This document shows positions 5,822 through 33,825 of a stretch of DNA of 64,000 bases, one piece after another; within the stretch, counting starts at the first letter, position 1, and the number at the start of each line of letters is the position of its first letter. A model generated the notes under the pieces. It was not told the origin of the DNA. It saw only the letters and a list, made by a program, of their open reading frames with translations, and ran no database searches. The stretch is from Adineta vaga (taxonomy: Eukaryota; Animalia; Rotifera), in assembly GCA_021613535.1 (NCBI GenBank), contig CP075494.1, positions 12,648,001 through 12,712,000 on the forward strand. The letters are read 5' to 3'. The position numbers and the translations under genes were made by a program.

Positions 5822-6972
5822 ATGGTCACTTTAGTATCGCATATTTCTGACTATTTCGAACAATTTAATAGTTCATTAACAAATGATTTCAATTCGAATA
5901 CACATGGTTTACCAACAGATAACGATCTTCGAACATATTATGTATTTGATTTTGAGCGATATAGTGATAAAATAGGAACATTAAACGATCTTCGAACATT
6001 CATGATTCAACGTTGGCATAATAGTTTTTTCTATGCCATTGCATATTTATTACTTATCTACGGTGAGTTTAATAAAGATAAGAAGAAAAAATTCTTTATT
6101 GAAATTTATTCTATCGATAGCTGGTCAAATGTATATGAAAAACAAGCCTCGATTTGAATTACGATTGTGGTTAGCTGCATGGAGTGGATTACTTGCTATA
6201 TTTTCAATCTTTGGTGCACTTCGTGTTCTACCTGAATTGATTTTTGTGATATATCGACATGGAATTAAAGATTCAATCTGTAATAATTCCAATGCATTTG
6301 GTGTAGTTGGATTTTGGTAAGAGAGAAAGAGAGATTTTCTTTGTTTAAAAGAAAAGAAAACGATTGTCTGTTATCATATTTTAGGACATGGGCATTTTGT
6401 TTCTCGAAATTACCTGAATTAATTGATACTGTTTTTATTGTTCTTCGTAAACAACCATTAATTTTTCTTCATTGGTATCATCATGCATCCGTTTTAGTTT
6501 ATTGTTGGTTTAGTTATCAAGATTACAGTTCAACTGGAAGGTAAAATTAAATCAGCTAATGCAAGATAAGAATGTTTAATTTTAGATGGTTTTGTGGATT
6601 AAATTATGTTGTTCATGCTGTTATGTATTCGGTATGTACAATTGGAATAGTATTCCTCAAATTTTCATATTATTTCTCTTGTAGTATTATGCTTTTCGTG
6701 CTCTTCGTTTTCGTATTCCACGTTGGATATCAATGACAGTAACAATGCTTCAATTGACACAGATGGTTGTTGGATGTTGGATTAATTTAAAAGCTTGGCA
6801 ATATAAAAAGAATGGCGAAACTTGTCATGTAACCGATGAAAATCTCAAGGTGTCACTCGTGATGTATGGAACATATTTTATCTTATTTGCTCAATTTTTC
6901 TTTGGTTCATATATATTTAAAACATCACAAAGCAAAAAGTCAAATGAAGAAGTCAGAAAAAAGATTGAGTAA
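5822..6972 (+). CDS. ELOVL6: Very-long-chain fatty acid elongase (ELOVL6/GNS1-SUR4 family), 5 exons
   Basis: [26 protein letters not shown] (HxxHH box), [20 protein letters not shown], and a C-terminal KKIE* ER-retrieval motif. Confidence 0.92.
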
Positions 6973-7459
6973 ATCTTCTTGTGAGAATGTATAGCCACGT
7001 TGTTTTTATAAATATTCATGTGATATTTGAAAAAAAAACAATAAATTGGCAACAAGGTGACGCATGATATGATTTCTATTCTTCCAAAATAAAAAACATA
7101 TCGATAATATTCAACATGATAGACGAGTTTTGTCATGATGGATACATCTCTTTCAAAGTCATTTACGATATAAAAATCAAATGATTGAAAAGTATACTTT
7201 CAAATATTTGATCAATGTAACAAACAAAACTCGAAATTTGATAAATATTTTTGTTTGATGTTTAATTGATCGAATCTAATGTAAACCATCTGGTTAGAGA
7301 AGTTCGTCAGTTTTGTTATTTGATGTAATGTTCCATGTATATTCAGTGTAATATTTTTCTAATAAAAGAATACGAGATTTCTTCAGGCATAGAATTCTTT
7401 CGATCGAATTCTTCTCTACTATAGTTGTAAATAACAAATATTCCTCTAAAATAAGACTA

Positions 7460-9279
7460 ATGAATAGAATAGAAATCATCCGCTTGATTTTTTTTCTATG
7501 TTTAATGAAGAATATTCGATCATTTAAAAATGCTATAAATCTAACAATTATATCGAATGATACTTATGAAATTACTAGAATTCTTAACGAACTTTTGCAA
7601 GATTATCAAGCACATATTCGACCTAAATTCAGCAGTAACATAAATAATTCTTTTAATTCACTTATTTATTTTTCTCTCTTTTCATTTAATAGATGGTTCA
7701 GCAATGATCGATGCTGATATTTTAGTCAATTCATTTGGTCCGATTCAAGAGATGGATATGGTTTATTTTCAATTGAATCTTTGATATTCTCAATTCTTAT
7801 TTCATTTTTAGTCGTATACAATAAATTGTTATTTTCGACAACGATGGCGTGATGAACGTTTACAATTTGCCGAAGATGTTGGCGTTCTTTCATTATCTAC
7901 ACGTATGCTTGAACGTCTTTGGAAGCCAGATACAATCTTCTATAATTCAAAACATTCGTTTTTACATTCAATACCAACAAGCAATCGTTTATGGAGATTA
8001 TTTCCCGATGGTACCATATGGTACTCGTCACGGTAAAAAAACGCAATCGATTTCAATGAAATTTCATTGTTGTTGATCTTAGAATAACAGTCAAAGCGAA
8101 ATGTAATATGAATTTAAAAAATTTTCCTCTCGATACACAGATTTGTCAATTGTTGATTGGTAGTTGTAAGTAGATGAATAATACAGAGAATGATATATAG
8201 TTAAATGTTTATTTTCAGTTGCAAATTCAGCATTAGATATTCAATATGTTTGGCGATTAGGCAATAATAAAAGTGTTCATTTTGATACGAAAGTTCTGTT
8301 ATCACAATTTGATCTCGTTCAATATTCACAGTTTAATGAAATTATTCCTATGAATGGACGTATGTAGAAGAAGCGCTTGTTTTTATATGAACGGTCAAAG
8401 TATAAGGGATAGAACTAGTCATTTTCAGTTGACAGATCAGTTCTCAAAAGAAATTCACATGAAAGACGTTGACAACATGTTATACTTACTTTGATATCGA
8501 CAAGATAAATAAGTTTATTTTACTGATATTGTTTGTCTACTGTAGGAAACTTTTCTGTACTTCGTATTGATTTCGTTCTTAAACGTCATATGGGTTATTA
8601 CATTATTCAAGTATATATTCCTAGTTCTATGTTAGTCATGTTATCATGGGTTTCATTTTTTATTCATCGAGAAGCGACAGCAGATCGTGTCAATATTGCC
8701 GTGATGACTTTTCTGAGTTTAACAACATTAAGTTTTGATATGCGACATCATACTGCTGCTATATCATATCTTACTGCACTTGATTGGTTTGTTATTATGG
8801 CTTATGTATTTCTTTTTGCTTCATTAATTCAATTTGCTTTTGTTCATTATTTTACAAAGGTTTGAGTGGACAACATCAACTTTGTTTTTCTGATAGATTT
8901 GTTTTTTTCTTTCATGTAGTTTGGATATGGTGAACCATTGATACGTTATCAAGATTCATTTGATGACACTACATTAAGTAGTAACAATATGCGAGGAAAT
9001 AATCTTGATTTTCGCCCGTCAATAATCTATTCAGATGTTGCAAATATTCATGATAGATCTAGAAAATTATGTTTAAATAATACGCATCGTTATCTGAATC
9101 GATTCTGGTTTTGTTTATCAGGTGATACAGATTATAAACGTTTTATACGTAAACGAACATCACGCGTTGGTGTAAATAGTCGAAGTCAATTAGATGTATA
9201 CGCACGTATTGTATTTCCAACTAGTTTTATTCTATTTAATATTTTATATTGGTTTTATTTTCTTTGTTTTCAATATTAA
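7460..9279 (+). CDS. Cys-loop ligand-gated ion channel subunit, GABA-A/glycine receptor family (GRD/alpha-like), 7 exons
   Basis: Signal peptide; YFRQRWRDERL; LWKPDTIFYN; Cys loop CNMNLKNFPLDTQIC; M1 YYIIQVYIPSSMLVMLSWVSF; M2 ADRVNIAVMTFLSLTTL; M3 TALDWF; M4 LDVYARIVFP. Confidence 0.93.
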
Positions 9280-25882: not shown

Positions 25883-26985
25883 TTAAATTTCATTTTTGCA
25901 CATTGTTTGTTGAATACGTTTACGTAATTCATTAACCTTGGCTTCTTGAGCACGGATGTGTTCATCTGTAATATTCACATACTAAAAATAAAGAGAAGAA
26001 AAGAGAAAAAAAAGAAGATGAACTTTTGTTTTTCTTTTTTTCAACGAACGTCTATTAATGGTTGATCACGTTGAATGTAAATCGTTGGATTCTTTTGAAA
26101 TTGTTTATTTTGACCAAATAATGCACGAGAATTACAATAGAGATGAAGTGATGTTGCTAAACTTATAACAACCGTTTCCGGTGACATATTTAAACCAACA
26201 CCTGCAAAAAGAAATCAAATAAATATTTCAATTTTCATCATGAAACTTTTGTTTTTTTGTTTGAATAGGTTTCTTTGAGATTAATAGAATTTGACGGAGT
26301 TCTTGAAGATGATTAATTAAGGATAACTTTTTTGGAAAATCATGCTTTCATCTGTATAGAATTAAATGTCAGGCACGAAAGTCTTTAGTCTTCTGATTAG
26401 AAAAAGCCTTAGTTGTGTGCTGATGCACCGGAGAGTTTGTTTAACGTCAAAAATGAACTTTCTTCTCTCTTTACTTTTTATAGGTTCTGGTAATTTCACA
26501 TGCTCGAAAGGTTTTTCATCAATATCGATTGGTCGGATATTTTGAAATCGTTTTTCCCAAAAAAGTTGTCGTGGTTTTGTTTTTTCACTCGGTTTTCCAC
26601 CATTAGCCGATGCTGTTGGATTATTTGGATTAATAACTTGTGCTTTCACTTCGTCACGTTCAAGTGGATAATGAGTGACAGGTTGTTTAAAGATTGGTAA
26701 TGTTTGCCGTAAAGGACATCTTAATGATTGATCACCTTTCGAATCTAAAAAATAAAGTTTACTTTTTTTTCAAGATAGAGAAAATTACTTACTTCGAACA
26801 ACTGAATTGCCGTCAACTGTTGGTTTAATACCATTTGTATGACCAATTTTTAGTTTTTTTGTCGCATTATCTTGTTGTAATGTTCGAGTTAATTTTGGTG
26901 GATGAATATTTAATGAACGATTTGCATTTGAAGATAATAACAATGATGATGATGAATTGCTTGTTCGACCTGTTGATTCATGCAT
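25883..26985 (-). CDS. MBD2/3: MBD2/3 homologue (NuRD subunit) lacking the methyl-CpG-binding domain, 4 exons
   Basis: PLRQTLPIFKQPVT, KPRQLFWEKR, VGLNMSPETVVISLATSLH, KNPTIYIQRDQPL, ITDEHIRAQEAKVNELRKRIQ match the MBDa and MBD_C coiled-coil regions of MBD2/3. Confidence 0.9.
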
Positions 26986-27139
26986 ATTTTTAATCTAAAA
27001 TTTTCATTGATTTATATACAAATTATTGTCAATATTACGAATAATAAAATCTACATCAATTGATTATTTTTTTACATATTTCAATAAAACTAAATAAAAA
27101 CAAAACGAAAAAAGAGATTCGGGAGTTTTCTTTTTTTGA

Positions 27140-30100
27140 CTAGGCCAGTGGAGATGATATTGCTTGAATTAATTCATCCAGTAATAATGAAATAATTGTA
27201 TCTGATGTTGTTTCAATGAGATTATCATTCGATGAAATAGAATGAGTACAACGTTTTTTAGTAACGATTGGTGATGAAATATGATTCTTATTACGTAAAC
27301 GTTTACTACCACGATTTGTATTTGTTTCATTGATTGTTGGTTGTTGAAAGAATTGATCAGGTGAAACTTTTGTTTCATGTGGAATTAAATTTGGATGATG
27401 ATAATGACAATATATTTTCTCGATAATACCATCGATATGAGACGATTTTTCTTCCAATTGTTTACCTGTAAGTTTTGATGAATGAATTGTTGAACGTCGA
27501 CGAGTAGTTTGTTGATAATATTCTTTTTGATGTGGCTAAAATATTTGAAATCATATTTTTAGATAAATAAATTCTAGATTTATACCTGATAATCTCTTTT
27601 AATCGATAGTTTTTCAATATAATTATCAAAACAATATGATTTTGTATTAATTCCAATATGTTTTGATTTAGGTAAACGTGTAAATGTTCGTGCTAATTTA
27701 TCCACACGATATTCACATATAAATAGATCTGTTGATAAAATTCGACTACCATATTCACATATGGGTTTCCCTTTACAAAATGTTCCGGGATCTAATACAT
27801 AACATGGACGAATAATTGATGTTAATTCAATTGAATCCGACGTTGATGGAAAACGAAACACTTCATTGGGAAAAAATTTACGATTTACTTCATGAAATGT
27901 TTCATATGGACGTAAATAATAGAAACCAGATGCTCGTACAATGTTATTCTCATCGATCCAAAGACGTTCAATACAAAAAATATCATATGATGTTGAGAAT
28001 GGCGATATCGATTGTTTATCTACTTCTTCTTGTTTCAAAATAAAATAAGATTCATTAACACGAACACTCAAACCATCCGAACGTGTTATTGTTAAGTATG
28101 AAGATTGATTGACATCAGGAATACATACATTCGTTTTAAGACAATCGGACGGATTTTGTTCACAAAGAGGATGACATTCAAAACAAAAATAAGGACGAGA
28201 TGTATCTGTGACTGTTACACATGCAGCATGTTGCCATAACTAAAGAAATGAAAACACAATGTGTGTTCGTCGATAGTTAAATAATAAATTTTACTTGACA
28301 AGCATAACATTGTATGAGTAATGTTTCATCATAAACAGATGTACATCGACAGTGAATAATAGAATCATTTGTACACGTATTTTTTGTTGTTCGATGTGTA
28401 CTCGTTGTAGTAGGAGTAACTGTTTTATAAACAATCGGTTGGGTATTATCCAAATCATAGATAATGTCATACATCGTTTCTCTAACTTGACCATCGATCA
28501 CTTCTTTTTCATGGAAACATGTGAGAAAATCTTTAAAAATATCGAGATTTCTTTCGTTTTGATTTTGATCATTTATATTATTGAATAAATTAATCGTCAA
28601 TTCATAATGAACTTTTAAAATATCAGTAAAATATCGTTGTAATTCGTTTACAGCTCGTCCAACATCTGAATCTTCACCACAATACGTCTAAAAGAAAAAA
28701 CGAACTTTCTATCATTTTCAATACCAAGTACAACTCAACATACGATAGCATTTGTAAATAATAACAAAAAATCATGTTCGAATGATTCATATGAAAAATA
28801 TTCTCCATTATCTAATTTATTACGTATAATTGATAAATCAATTGGTTTCGAAATAATTTCATAATACATCGGAAAAAGACGTTTTAATGGACATTTTTTC
28901 AATGCATTCGATGGATGTATATCACTATTATAGCATTTAAAATTTAATAATAATTCGAACATATCATTGAGTATGAGCGTTAACTGTGCTAATTGAGCAT
29001 AATAACATGTTTTATCAATTAACTCGAGATAATATTGACCAGTTTTACCAAAATGTGATCGACGAATATGATTATAGAATACATTCAATAGATCTAAATA
29101 GAATTTCTTATAAATATTTCCATAGAAATGTGTGTTACCTTTATGAGAGAGAATTTCTGTATGATGTCTTTGTTCCGAAGAATTTCGATGAAAGTAATTT
29201 TGTGCAAAGAAAAGTGGTGATAATGGGTGATCGTTGTGTTGTTTTTGTTGATTATTATTCTTATCTTTAAATTCGTTTTGTTCTTTGATTCTTCGAAGAT
29301 TACGTTTGAGAAAAATAAATGATTGGGAGACAATTTGTTTTTCATCTTCAGTTAATTCTTCCATTTTTATGATATTTTTATTCAGATGATGTTTTTTAGT
29401 TGGAGAGAGAAGATGATGTTGTATTGATGGATCAATTGAAATATTCCGAATAATTCGTTTATTAGGTAATGGTTGTTTTTGTTTGGATTCACTAGATTTT
29501 TTCTTTTTTGGTGGACTAACAAGTTCTGTAGGCGAAGAAATAGTATTGCCTGATTTTTGATTCAACCAATAAATATCATACGGAAGTTTATAATCAATAT
29601 AGGAGGATCTATTTTCTTCAGATTGAAATATTGCAGTATAAAACGGTGGTAATGAACCTGAAGTTGATTGTTGTCGACGTGAAAGACGACTTTTACTACT
29701 AAAAAATAGAACGAAAAACTTTTGTTTTATTTCTATGAAGAATAGTTGGATTGATGACGTACTTAGTCAATTTTGAATCAATTTCATTGTTTGTTTTATA
29801 ATAATTTGAACGAAGACCATTTTTGATAAAATTTTGCTTGGGTAATTCATCTGGTAATATATCGTCGTCACTAGAAGATTGATAAACATGATTGATGAAA
29901 ATGATTATCATTATTCATATCTTACCTATCTGAATATGAAAGATCTTGAGATTCATTGGTGATAATTTCTGGTGATAATGGCAGTATTATCTTTTTCTTC
30001 TTTGTTTCCGACACTTGTGAATGGATTGTAATCGATGGTTTTCGTTTTCGATTGATAATCGTATTGTTATTCACTTCTTTTTCTGTAGGTGGTGATGTTA

Positions 30101-31362
30101 AAATAACAACTGCTGGAATTTCTTCACTAACACGACGTTCAATCGATGTTATGGCTCGTGGTTTTTCTCTGTTATGTTTATGTTTTAGTCGTCGTCCACG
30201 TTTTCTCGAGTCATGTTCAAAAGTAGATATTGGTGAATTCAGTTTAATCGTCATGGTATCATCGATATCTGTCGGTGATCGAGGATTAATGATAATTGGT
30301 AAATTATTTTGTTTCATGAAAAGTTTTGATTTCGAACCAAAATAATGACCTCGTTGAACAGCAATATGAAAATGTGGATAGTATGTACGTACTAAAAGTT
30401 TTTGCATATGTTCATAATGAAGATTTATTTGTTCTTCACCCGATAATTTTTCTTCAAAGTTAGTTTTTGTTGGTAGAAATATTTGTTTCTTTGGATTTAA
30501 TTGTAGAATATGAAAGATATTCTTTGGTTCATATCGATGTGTTGATGAACTTCGACGATTAACGGACCAATCTATTTTAAATGAAGTCGATGATGTTGAT
30601 GAAATATCTGTTTTGATTGATTCGTCTTTTTTTGTATCAGACAATTTTTGTGATTTTTTGAAATAATCAATTTTAAAGATTTTATTTAAAATATTATGAC
30701 GAGTTTTAAAGAATTGTTGTTTGATTGATGAAGAAAATTTCTTATCAATATGCAAACATGAATGTAAATGGATGGATAATGTATTAACATCTGCATAATC
30801 CAGATAACGATGATCACGTAATTCATCTTCATTATGGCCAGGTAACGATTGAAGATCTGTTGCAATTGGAATTATAGAAATGCTATTTAATGATGAATCA
30901 AAGGATTGACGTTTTCGTAGAGATATATTTTCCTCGTCAATTGTAGTACTGTTAATTGAAGAGAAATCTTTTGATCGTGAAGATTTACGAATAGTGATTT
31001 TCTTATGACGACTTGATGAACGTTTTGAACTTGTAGATTTTGGTGTTGGTGGGGTAGTATATGTAGGTATATCTTCAAATGCTTCTGTAGATGGTGATTC
31101 CGGTGGAAAAATTTCGTCGAAATGAATTGGTTCTGGGGAATGTGATTGATGACCATTTATATTTATAGAAATTGGTGTACTACTGTTCGATGGTGGTTCG
31201 GTTTTACGAATTGTTTCAATCAATTTGAACCAACCACGCATTTGACCAGTTGAATCGACACTTGTCGGTGATAGTTTCGATTTATCCTAGAATTTTTCAA
31301 TTAATATAATAAATAAAGTTAAATAAAAATATGATTACCATATGTTGATTTTCACTCGTCAT
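27140..31362 (-). CDS. ASH1L: ASH1L-like chromatin reader (bromodomain, PHD, BAH) with no SET domain, 7 exons
   Basis: FIKNGLRSNYYK and IDYKLPYDIYW (ASH1 pre-AWS motifs); bromodomain YYEIISKPIDL...FTNAI|TYCGEDSDVGR; PHD IHCRC...IQCYACQ|LWQHAAC...YFCFEC; BAH DIFCIERLW...YYLRPYETFHEVNRKFFPNEVF...FICEYRVDKLARTF. Confidence 0.88.
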
Positions 31363-31953
31363 CGTTTAGGATATTTTATTAAAAGCATTGATCAATTGTG
31401 AAAAGAAAATACGATCGTTACAAAGAAATGTGTTCACTAATAGATATGTACATCGTAGAAAAAAATGACAGATATAATAACGATATTGAAATAAAAAAGG
31501 TAAATTGAACACTTTGGTTTGGTTATGTTTTTCTCTCTTTCGTTCGTTCGTTCGTTTGTTCGTTCTTTCTTCTCTTCTTCTCTCTTCCCTTCTGCTGATA
31601 ATTGTTGTTTATTGTATTTAACCTCTTGTTTATTCTTTATTGTTCTTCGCTATTCCATTGGATAAATGACTCATTTGTCAATCTTTATTTTTCTTGTGTC
31701 CGAGTTTAAATATAAAAAAGTAACCAATAATCAGCAAAACATGTGAAAGATGTCACTAGATAACAATACGATGTAAAAGCTATAAAACAAGAGTGTGTAT
31801 TGATTGATTTTTAGATATCGTTTAATGATCAGAGACATGAAAGATAAATATATATTGATTATTTTATGTATTTCAGCAATTTTAATAGCTAATTACAATG
31901 AGTTTAGTACATTAAGACATTGATCTAAATTGTCGAAAGTTCTATCAATGAAA

Positions 31954-33825
31954 TTAGAGTTTTAGTAATTTCTTTTTCGTACGTAGGAGATTCTTTTTAC
32001 ATCGTTGTATGTCAGGATCAGTTATCGGTAATGAATGATAAGCAATAGTGATAGCACGTTCATAGTAAAAATGTGCATTAGCATAGTCATCAATGCGTTC
32101 ATATATCATACCAATGAAATCATAGTGAAGTACCAAATCAGGATGATTATGAACGATTAATCGTTGTTTGATTGTGAGCGATTTTTCAAGATATAACAGT
32201 GCTTTTGAATAATTCTTTATTATATAATAGACGGTACCGAGGTTGTTGTATAATTTATCTAAATCGGGATACATGGAAAGAAGTGATTGTTGTTGAGTTG
32301 TCAGAAAATTTTCATAATTAGATAAAACTTCTGTAAAGACGATCAGTTTCCGATGTATTTCATCAATGTTTTCGTACAAAGCAGGTAAATTGGTGTGTAC
32401 ACACGAAAATACAGATTGTTCGAAGATTTCAAGTTCTCTGTCATATAATTTCTTCGCTTCTTCATAACTTCCTGGACTATCTTCTGTTTGAATAGGATGG
32501 TGGTTCTGAACAACTTCTTGTACATTTTTGACTTCGTCCATTTTACGTAGGAATAAATCCAGAGAATCTTGTGCCGTTGGTCCTTTTATTTCTTCTCGTA
32601 TTCTTTCAGCAAAATCACGAAGATTTTCATCAGTATCATTAGTTAGTATTAAATTCACCTCATACAAACAAGCATTATTCTCTGTTTGTTTAATGTCTTG
32701 AATACGAAAAACACTGTTCATCGAAAAGAGTACTTCATCATCATCGTCAAAAGTTCCAACATGACGTATGGAAGCAAACGGGACTGTTGCTCGAGATGGA
32801 TCAATTGTCAAAACATAAAAAACTCCTATCATATTAGGATCACCTTGACAACTTTCAGCATAAAGTAGAGCCACATTGCGATCCTTGGTAGCAGATAAAA
32901 AGTTATTAAATGCAAGTAATCCACCTTTGCTATTTTTCATTTGAATTAAATCAGTGTGTGACATAGATTGACCACGATAAACAGTAAAGATATCATTAGA
33001 TTGATGTTTACCGAATTGTTCGGAATGAAGTTGTGCGATTTGAAGATGGAGATCACGAATGTAAAAGCCCATGATAACAGTGAGAGGAATATTCAAAGTT
33101 TGTAATGCTCGATTGATTATTGGAGACAAATAACAATCACGCGTGTAGCAACTAAGAGGTGTTTGATGAGAGTATTCTTGTTCGAATTTTTTAAGAATTT
33201 CTAGCTTAAGATTGTCTCCAGTAAGTAATTGACGAAAGTGAGCAATAAATTTTTGAAAATGTTCTTTTGTGTAGTCGATTTTAAGCAAGATTTCTATAAG
33301 AATCTGCATCTGCATGAATGAAATATCAAGTTTATTCAAGTTATTCTTTACTGCACTGTGATCAATAGGTTGGTTGAATGCTTCACAAACAGAAGTCATA
33401 TCAGAGGAACAACCTTTTACTTTTGACCATTCATCATTCCATTCTTGATTTTTTGCTTCGTTTTTATCAAAGATAAAGATAGTATGAAGTTGATGAATAT
33501 CATGGATCAAAGGTATGAGCCAATGACTTGATGTATTAGGAATGATTAGAGTTACTGTATCATTCCAGCAATTTGTAAGAAAGTCAATACATTGATCAGT
33601 ATCAGTAAAAATGTTGACAGTGTGAACGATGTTTTGTAGTTGTTTGACATTATTTGGATAATTGTCGTTGCTTATATCAGTATCTTGATGTAGCCAAATG
33701 AGAGAATGATTTTTTTCATGATCAGTTGTAGTTTCTTCTTGTCTAGCATTCAAGGAGTCAGGTACTTGTCGGAATACATCAAATACAGTATCTTCTGAAT
33801 TTGTCATAGTGACAGTCGTTGTCAT
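31954..33825 (-). CDS. Intronless ADP-ribosyltransferase-domain plus TPR-repeat protein
   Basis: 623-aa ORF. ART R-S-E motifs VYRGQ, FNNFLSAT, DDEVLF; C-terminal TPRs (LYNNLGTVY...YSKALLYLEKSLTI...HPDL). Confidence 0.88.
   Translation of the reverse strand: MTTTVTMTNSEDTVFDVFRQVPDSLNARQEETTTDHEKNHSLIWLHQDTDISNDNYPNNVKQLQNIVHTVNIFTDTDQCIDFLTNCWNDTVTLIIPNTSSHWLIPLIHDIHQLHTIFIFDKNEAKNQEWNDEWSKVKGCSSDMTSVCEAFNQPIDHSAVKNNLNKLDISFMQMQILIEILLKIDYTKEHFQKFIAHFRQLLTGDNLKLEILKKFEQEYSHQTPLSCYTRDCYLSPIINRALQTLNIPLTVIMGFYIRDLHLQIAQLHSEQFGKHQSNDIFTVYRGQSMSHTDLIQMKNSKGGLLAFNNFLSATKDRNVALLYAESCQGDPNMIGVFYVLTIDPSRATVPFASIRHVGTFDDDDEVLFSMNSVFRIQDIKQTENNACLYEVNLILTNDTDENLRDFAERIREEIKGPTAQDSLDLFLRKMDEVKNVQEVVQNHHPIQTEDSPGSYEEAKKLYDRELEIFEQSVFSCVHTNLPALYENIDEIHRKLIVFTEVLSNYENFLTTQQQSLLSMYPDLDKLYNNLGTVYYIIKNYSKALLYLEKSLTIKQRLIVHNHPDLVLHYDFIGMIYERIDDYANAHFYYERAITIAYHSLPITDPDIQRCKKNLLRTKKKLLKL

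Follow-up and report, generated by a model that had tools for sequence, protein, structure and literature searches.

An ASH1 homoeologue without its SET domain in the bdelloid rotifer Adineta vaga

Introduction

What can a histone methyltransferase gene still be for once the segment that encodes its catalytic module has gone? The question is raised by a gene on the minus strand of a 64,000-nucleotide (nt) stretch of the Adineta vaga genome (GenBank assembly GCA_021613535.1, contig CP075494.1, positions 12,648,001 to 12,712,000), here referred to as the window, in which positions are counted from the first letter. The gene is of the ASH1 type, occupies 27140-31241, and has 8 exons that encode 1258 amino acids. 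A first-pass annotation, made from the letters alone, had taken it for a homologue of human ASH1L from which the whole AWS-SET-postSET module is missing. The results presented below lead us to regard it as, almost certainly, a genuine and functional SET-less homoeologue of ASH1.

ASH1 is a classic trithorax-group regulator, and it is debated which share of its function is due to methylation of histone H3 lysine 36 (H3K36), and which to its chromatin-reading domains and the docking of MRG15. In the fly and human proteins, an FxLP motif, some 40 residues ahead of AWS, is the binding site for the MRG domain of MRG15; mutation of the motif abolishes MRG15 binding, and MRG15 binding stimulates the ASH1 SET domain (Schmaehling et al. 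2018, PMC5963871).

Results

The catalytic module is absent from the window gene

In the minus-strand translation of 28738-29766, the segment LTEDEKQIVSQSFIFLKRNLRRIK begins 24 codons after PLPNKRIIRNISIDP (29472-29428), and the bromodomain then follows. The 72 nt between the two segments are a plain open frame, too short for a hidden intron. Exon 4 (29139..29698, minus strand), which holds the putative MRG15-docking motif, the deletion junction and a conserved linker, is unbroken in mRNA: one contig from each of two RNA runs (X8 and X10) covers 29139-29698 without a SET exon at the junction, which bears out the earlier statement that no intron conceals the domain.

The extent of the loss is apparent from a comparison with a second gene, at C2:4779457-4785000, which has the same exon layout as the window gene and an intact catalytic module. 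Where the C2 copy has about 225 residues, comprising AWS, SET and post-SET, together with an intron, the window copy has 22 residues (29430-29365). The tblastx collinearity at the junction passes from 7114 to 7903 in C2, as against 29448 to 29364 in the window. At the protein level, residues 21-112 of the window open reading frame (ORF) align by BLASTP to the C2 segment directly before AWS (3e-15), residues 135-214 to the segment directly after post-SET (3e-11), and residues 226-342 to the bromodomain exon (68% identity, 1e-57). The junction, 29365..29430 on the minus strand, is thus delimited by alignment blocks that stop at residue 112 and resume at residue 135.

Profile searches agree with this picture. 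A six-frame search of the whole genome, covering six chromosome-scale contigs and 100.8 Mb, placed no Pfam SET match within the 64-kb window, the nearest being about 47 kb outside it, and neither PF00856 nor PF17907 was matched in the window. Exon 4 searched alone gave no Pfam family, nor did exon 2, exon 6 or exon 8. The genome-wide search for AWS returned just two matches and missed the intron-split AWS of the C2 gene, and the absence of AWS by that search alone is uninformative. A 115-residue piece spanning the junction had no match among solved structures; the link to human ASH1L is made through the C2 copy. Because the defining domain was searched for and is absent, the window gene is by definition not an ASH1 methyltransferase, and we infer that its protein would be unable to methylate histones.

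A catalytic homoeologue is present on chromosome 2

The first-pass annotation had proposed to look for a SET-containing paralogue elsewhere in the genome, and such a copy is indeed found on C2, at about 4.78 Mb. A genome search with the BAH exon identified a 65%-identical copy at C2:4784468-4784947, which lies 1.7 kb downstream of the best SET match in the genome (C2:4782444-4782761, 1.2e-25). In the C2 gene, the AWS cysteines, the NHSC and ELTYDY motifs and the post-SET CxCxxxxC pattern are all kept, and the SET domain scores 94 bits in Pfam. Over the bromodomain and BAH exons the window and C2 copies are 62-68% identical. A published inventory (PMC8885841) lists in its supplement the entry '#ASH1_allelic_pair Av_s450_GSADVT00056000001', to which the start of the C2 protein corresponds save for a small number of allelic differences. 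Since a catalytic homoeologue is present on C2, the animal has not lost ASH1 activity.

On the downstream side, the genes next to the two loci are also collinear (C2 4785977-4788971 with window 26754-23888), and no collinearity extends into the 4 kb upstream of the two ASH1 loci. A further pair of SET genes is located 74-97 kb downstream of both loci (C5:12601214-12601649 and C2:4879324-4879727), each on the strand of its ASH1 gene; this second pair extends the homoeologous block well beyond the window. The chromosome pairs 1, 2 and 3 of A. vaga are homoeologous to 4, 5 and 6, respectively (Simion et al. 2021, PMC8494291). Based on the collinear block and the homoeology of chromosomes 2 and 5, the window gene is the chromosome-5 homoeologue of the C2 ASH1 gene.

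The flanking motifs and the reader cassette are retained

Around the junction, the window protein keeps a YxLP version of the FxLP MRG15-binding motif, IDYKLPYDIYWL (29563..29598, minus strand; translation of 28738-29766), about 30 residues ahead of PLPNKRIIRN, a segment found before AWS in the C2 copy. By sequence and position this is a candidate FxLP-type MRG15-docking motif. The Y, L, P, D, I and W of Y-x-L-P-x-D-I-x-W are invariant in 8/8 aligned rotifer copies, and the same set of copies has four invariant motifs around the lost module, SxxLPxFY, YxLPxDIxW, FLxRN and FxxQNYxH. Behind the junction, the linker LTEDEKQIVSQSFIFLKRNLRRIK (29284..29355, minus strand) aligns to LTQREKRMVFQSSIFLLRNLRKIQ, which stands right behind post-SET in the C2 copy.

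The human counterparts of these segments had been named in the first-pass annotation, and for the first two the positional homology holds, as the flanks of the C2 copy match both the window exon and the ASH1L chains of the ASH1L-MRG15 structures 6AGO and 6INE. In these chains, HIDYHLPYDIYW of the C2 copy corresponds to RIDFQLPYDILW, and its PYKKLFRNVYSD to LYKKIRSNVYVD; the human sequence so matched includes LYKKIRSNVYVDV. The counterpart proposed for LTEDEKQIVSQSFIFLKRNLRRIK lies in a region that no solved chain spans.

Two MRG-domain genes (PF05712) are present in the genome, at C5:11255677-11256177 and C2:14135765-14136329. The functional reading put forward in the first-pass annotation, of a reader-only or dominant-negative protein that may recruit MRG15 and bind H3K4me chromatin, is made more plausible by these genes together with the invariant Y-x-L-P-x-D-I-x-W motif. 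We also note that the MRG15-like genes form a C5/C2 pair of their own, and each ASH1 homoeologue may have its own MRG partner.

The C-terminal part of the protein has the ASH1-type order of bromodomain, PHD finger and BAH domain. In the translated 28738-29766 segment the bromodomain is matched by Pfam PF00439 at 6e-14, and an alignment of 84 residues links it to the ASH1L bromodomain 3MQM; its main part is in exon 5 (28744..29093, minus strand), which taken alone matches PF00439 at 4e-15 and is 68% identical to the C2 copy. Exon 6 (28295..28687, minus strand) encodes the bromodomain end TYCGEDSDVGRAV and, behind a linker, half of the PHD finger (HCRC...CYAC), of which the other half (LWQHAAC...CFEC) is in exon 7 (27586..28239, minus strand) together with the BAH domain (Pfam, 5e-12). 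The top solved-structure match of exon 7, which is also what identifies the gene as an ASH1L homologue, is the PHD-BAH unit of human ASH1L (8VLH, residues 1-217, 1e-25). The PHD finger is split by an intron, with the full C4HC3 set of zinc ligands present across exons 6 and 7, and it was identified by this ligand pattern and by weak alignment to 8ZXC and 8VLH, not by Pfam. In the weak match of exon 6 to the ASH1L bromo-PHD chain 8ZXC (E about 0.6), YYGRKSPIGRDV is aligned with YCGEDSDVGRAV, and a second stretch of 20 residues with IHCRCTSVYDETLLIQCYAC. As the first-pass annotation had held, all three reader domains are intact.

The locus is intact and transcribed

Contigs from four sequencing runs, X1 and X16 (DNA) and X8 and X10 (RNA), were compared with the window over 27100-31400. 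An 8.4-kb DNA contig of X1 is identical to the window across the whole gene, and contigs of X16, which differ by about 1% single-nucleotide polymorphisms (SNPs), cover the junction (28975-29407 and 29378-29656) without an insertion or deletion. In X8, a single 3942-nt contig passes through the junction with seven introns spliced out, and X10, which comes from another study, has the same joints. The introns are all of the minus-strand GT..AG type and lie, by the X8 contig, at 27536-27585, 28240-28294, 28688-28743, 29094-29138, 29699-29762, 29871-29925 and 31286-31337. Because neither DNA run shows the joints, the spliced contigs are best read as complementary DNA (cDNA).

Database searches were run per exon, and the joined 1258-residue model was used just for the frame check and the classification of SNPs. 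The joined exons give a coding sequence of 3777 nt, corresponding to 1258 codons and a stop, with 0 internal stops. A collapse or deletion of the assembly at 29356-29427 and SET exons in cDNA had been named beforehand as outcomes that would overturn the finding; the DNA contigs from two studies show no such defect, and the cDNA contig has no such exons. These contigs show a gene that is real DNA and whose transcript is correctly spliced into a frame of 1258 codons.

SET-less, pseudo-SET and SET-bearing copies in other rotifers

Numerous rotifer ORFs of exon size were recovered by word search, in which the junction ORF and the BAH exon served as queries. The same SET-less junction is present in Rotaria magnacalcarata (P0011) and in P0002, P0003, P0009, P0010, P0012, P0013 and P0016, and occurs in a more diverged form in P0005. 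Intact, SET-bearing orthologues are represented by P0004, P0007, P0008, P0015 and P0021. Between these stand two pseudo-SET intermediates, P0017 (L045) and P0001 (L039), with a shortened SET domain that still scores 59 bits in Pfam. Both have lost half of AWS, a portion of the SET insert region and the cysteines of post-SET, and their motifs are altered from GxG to TPS, from NHSC to RHSA or RPSS, and from ELTYDY to ELTYNH or ELTYNS. By established knowledge of SET catalysis, these domains should be catalytically inactive. The two copies (L045:6181-7233 and L039:8123-9194) come from a GC-rich rotifer lineage (46-48% GC).

In trees of rotifer copies, built with no non-rotifer outgroup of known name, the concatenated bromodomain, PHD and BAH regions of 10 loci separate the SET-bearing copies (C2, L044 and L047) from all SET-less and pseudo-SET copies with support of 100/100, and the N-terminal exon, analysed separately, gives the same division into SET-bearing and SET-defective copies (100/99). 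In two independent regions, the window gene thus belongs to a sister clade of the SET-bearing rotifer ASH1 genes, as expected for descent from ASH1, and the possibility that its bromodomain-PHD-BAH unit falls outside ASH1 is answered in the negative. The grouping of SET-defective copies is weak (87/35) when the BAH domain alone is used (48 sequences), and therefore the concatenation and the second region were needed.

Each side of the split contains both the AT-rich lineage (Adineta, Rotaria) and the GC-rich one, from which it follows that the duplication predates the separation of the AT-rich and GC-rich lineages. Two SET-bearing loci (L044 and L047) and one pseudo-SET locus (L039) share one sample. 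Compositional attraction as the cause of the topology was judged unlikely, as the SET-bearing and the SET-defective sequences of high GC content stay apart in the tree. The SET-less locus L040 clusters with the pseudo-SET loci inside the defective clade (100/100 and 96/95). A single origin of all fully SET-less forms was rejected by the approximately unbiased (AU) test (p = 0.0015), the group having been defined after the tree was seen. The simplest history suggested by these relationships would be that inactivation came first and was followed by at least two independent complete deletions.

A few sequences require separate mention. Two short BAH fragments from Logan contigs (P0069 and P0070) form a very long branch outside the other rotifer ASH1 BAH sequences, and could belong to an animal outside the bdelloids or represent another paralogue. 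A one-base frame break is seen in the BAH exon of L043 (8410-8412, in a contig of 2x coverage), and one stop in the N-terminal exon match of L039 (within 6545-7903, 6x coverage). Assembly errors at low coverage, or a small intron, are the probable cause in both cases, not real disruptions.

The window gene is constrained

The ratio of non-synonymous to synonymous substitution rates (dN/dS; Nei-Gojobori) between the window copy and three SET-less orthologues is 0.20, 0.31 and 0.19, and falls to 0.12-0.16 in the bromodomain and BAH exons when the nearest orthologue is used. A value of about 0.2 indicates purifying selection on the window gene. Between the assembly and X16, the 3777 coding bases differ by 15 synonymous and 14 non-synonymous SNPs, and 524 non-coding bases by 11; non-synonymous sites are therefore altered at a rate several-fold below that of synonymous or non-coding sites. 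For the pseudo-SET copies of the GC-rich lineage (L045 versus L039), dN/dS is 0.20 in the pseudo-SET stretch and 0.08 in the bromodomain and BAH exons. At 0.20, the pseudo-SET stretch is not drifting neutrally.

The N- and C-terminal regions are 36-45% identical to the catalytic copy and 57-74% identical among SET-less orthologues. Divergence from the former combined with conservation among the latter leans towards a role of its own for the SET-less protein.

Remaining exons and neighbouring genes

Exon 1 (31338.., minus strand) belongs to the 5' untranslated region (UTR) and extends past 31400, the end of the stretch compared; the X8 and X10 contigs omit 31286-31337, which has GT..AG ends. 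Exon 2 (29926..31285, minus strand) carries the start codon (31241-31239) and encodes the N-terminal 438 residues, as given by the ORF list and the contig joints. Its N-terminus, MRGWFKL..., resembles the start of the C2 copy, MHGWIKL..., and its identity to that copy is about 42-45%. Exon 3 (29763..29870, minus strand; contig joints and translation), which encodes DDDILPDELPKQNFIKNGLRSNYYK..., is 66% identical to the C2 copy and conserved among relatives. Exon 8 (27140..27535, minus strand) encodes the C-terminal 131 residues and is 66-74% identical to SET-less orthologues, as against 36% to the C2 copy; it ends in the stop codon at 27142-27140, and the 3' UTR reaches at least to 27119.

The region 28744-29698 had been described as one open exon. 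The frame is open throughout, but the contigs split it into two exons separated by a 45-nt intron (29094-29138), which is far from the deletion junction and leaves the finding unaffected. This intron is itself in frame and free of stops, such that its retention would add 15 residues and keep the frame. It is removed in the RNA contigs of two runs, and an intron stands in the corresponding place of the C2 copy.

The upstream neighbour (31954-33825, minus strand) is a single-exon ORF of 623 residues; its C-terminal part has TPR repeats (TPR_12, 2e-14), and its N-terminal part matched no family with confidence. No such gene stands upstream of the C2 ASH1 copy, and collinearity ends at the 5' end of the ASH1 gene. 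The downstream neighbour (25892-26754, minus strand) looks like an MBD2/3-type gene, with a weak match to the Pfam MBDa p55-binding family (5e-4) that is below the curated cut-off. This MBD2/3-like neighbour is conserved beside both homoeologues and in other rotifer contigs (L045:9375-9773 and L048:4806-5111).

Discussion

Based on these observations, we favour the explanation that the window gene is an anciently duplicated ASH1 homoeologue that has lost catalysis and serves as a reader or adaptor, to which as a whole we assign a probability of roughly 0.65. An ancient duplication of the gene for the ASH1 H3K36 methyltransferase would have been followed by loss of catalysis in the chromosome-5 copy. 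In this lineage the whole AWS-SET-postSET block and its intron would have been removed in frame, and the N-terminal region, the Y-x-L-P motif, the post-SET linker and the bromodomain-PHD-BAH cassette kept around it. The resulting protein may sit on chromatin through its PHD-BAH unit, with an atypical bromodomain, and may bind an MRG15 homologue through the YxLP motif, bringing MRG15-containing complexes with it; it would be a non-catalytic adaptor or reader, which does not itself write dimethylated H3K36 (H3K36me2). As for the adaptor mechanism taken separately, i.e., docking through bromodomain, PHD and BAH and bringing of MRG15 without writing of H3K36me2, we consider the odds even.

Several points weigh against this explanation or the data behind it. 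The bromodomain has a cysteine where human ASH1L has a tyrosine and canonical bromodomains have the acetyl-lysine-binding asparagine, and because the canonical asparagine is replaced, reading of acetyl-lysine by this domain is doubtful. The docking motif is YxLP, not FxLP, but the same tyrosine is present in the catalytic C2 copy and in all rotifer copies. With respect to the contigs, X1 may be derived from the strain of the assembly itself, which leaves X16 as the sole clearly distinct DNA, and X16 covers the junction by two contigs with a 30-nt overlap, near which there are also unrelated loose ends. The 'RNA?' labels of X8 and X10 are guesses, and the reading of these runs as RNA rests on the precise removal of introns.

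The same set of retained parts could also make the protein an antagonist, which competes with the catalytic homoeologue for MRG15, Caf1 and chromatin sites and damps H3K36me2, in keeping with the dominant-negative reading entertained from the outset. The MRG15-docking motif and the reader cassette are exactly the parts that would compete, and MRG15 binding is known to activate ASH1 (PMC5963871), but the genome has two MRG-domain homoeologues, so partners need not be limiting. Furthermore, the termini have diverged from the catalytic copy and are conserved among SET-less orthologues, which suggests partners or targets of its own over mimicry, and we consider the role of an antagonist or MRG15 sink unlikely.

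A different form of cooperation would be that of an obligate non-catalytic partner, which, like DNMT3L, targets or stimulates the catalytic ASH1 in the same complex. Both homoeologues have long been retained together in every sampled lineage where both could be seen, and in one lineage a dead-looking SET domain is under constraint (dN/dS 0.20), as for a structural or partner-binding domain of a pseudoenzyme. However, the SET remnant is wholly gone in Adineta and Rotaria, so pairing mediated by SET cannot be general, and we know of no dimerisation of ASH1 through SET. A partner role of this kind appears quite improbable.

Loss of the defining domain is the way in which many duplicates start to die, and the allelic SNPs, at 14 non-synonymous to 15 synonymous, are just moderately skewed, as a transcribed pseudogene in slow decay would have it. 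Against this stand the intact frame of 1258 codons with seven correctly spliced introns, the architecture kept in Adineta, Rotaria and other lineages with invariant short motifs, and dN/dS of about 0.2, down to 0.08-0.16 in the bromodomain and BAH exons; decay is thus very improbable and, together with an assembly artefact, effectively excluded. A collapsed or mis-joined region with SET exons truly at the locus, to which loose contig ends near 29378 (X16) and 29428 (X1) might point, has a negligible probability, as the X16 loose ends are spread over the whole gene, the X1 end is a 22-nt match of an unrelated contig, the junction is spanned by continuous contigs of both DNA and RNA, and independent species and metagenomes have the same junction.

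Returning to the favoured explanation of a reader or adaptor without catalysis, it is tempting to extend it from this locus to bdelloids in general. Since an ancient genome duplication, these animals may have had a dedicated non-catalytic ASH1, a natural separation-of-function protein of the trithorax group in which MRG15 docking and chromatin reading are kept and SET was lost stepwise, catalytic death with a constrained pseudo-SET, which one lineage still has, coming before at least two separate clean deletions. We offer this extension tentatively, at somewhat less than even odds. If it is true, ASH1 has an important role independent of methylation, which can be maintained by selection alone. 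A long-conserved and expressed copy without the enzyme, beside an intact twin in one genome, also makes a ready-made comparison of catalytic and non-catalytic ASH1, and the divergence of this whole-genome-duplication pair is preserved with its intermediates, from an intact SET through a constrained dead SET to no SET.

As far as checked, a SET-less ASH1 homoeologue is new to the literature. We found no published description of a SET-less bdelloid ASH1; among the papers searched, the SET-domain inventory (PMC8885841) is the one bdelloid study that mentions ASH1 as a methyltransferase, and a search for methyltransferase-independent roles of ASH1L returned nothing useful. The inventory records ASH1 in A. 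vaga solely as an allelic pair (Rodriguez et al. 2022, PMC8885841), and because it is SET-based, it could not detect the window gene. Inventories of chromatin enzymes that are compiled by SET-domain search miss such SET-less genes by construction.

Comparison with known systems

The window gene is homologous to ASH1/ASH1L (KMT2H), which methylates histones to H3K36me2 in the Ash1-MRG15-Caf1 (AMC) complex, and its parts follow one another in the same way, from the FxLP-type motif and the post-SET linker to the bromodomain, PHD and BAH, but it is without AWS, SET and post-SET, and has YxLP in place of FxLP. With its C2 homoeologue it shares the exon layout, down to the short intron that stands ahead of the bromodomain, and the downstream synteny; the C2 gene keeps AWS-SET-postSET, whereas the window copy has 22 unrelated residues in this place. 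The pseudo-SET orthologues (L045 and L039) belong to the same SET-defective clade and have the ...K[ML]EELTE.EK... linker in common with the window copy, but differ in that a shortened SET domain remains, under constraint (dN/dS 0.20).

Beyond ASH1, a form of NSD3 known as NSD3-short serves as an adaptor or scaffold. It is an isoform of the H3K36 methyltransferase NSD3 without the catalytic domain (reviews PMC10815784 and PMC8398374). As for the window gene, the family is one of H3K36 methyltransferases, reader modules are kept and SET is absent. Unlike the window gene, which is a separately evolving duplicate, NSD3-short is an alternative transcript of one gene, and its readers are PWWP domains.

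A duplicate of a chromatin writer that has lost catalysis and persisted under selection is also found in DNMT3L and in further dead paralogues of chromatin enzymes. DNMT3L keeps a degenerate catalytic fold, through which it binds the active enzyme. In the SET-less ASH1 of Adineta and Rotaria, in contrast, the fold has been deleted.

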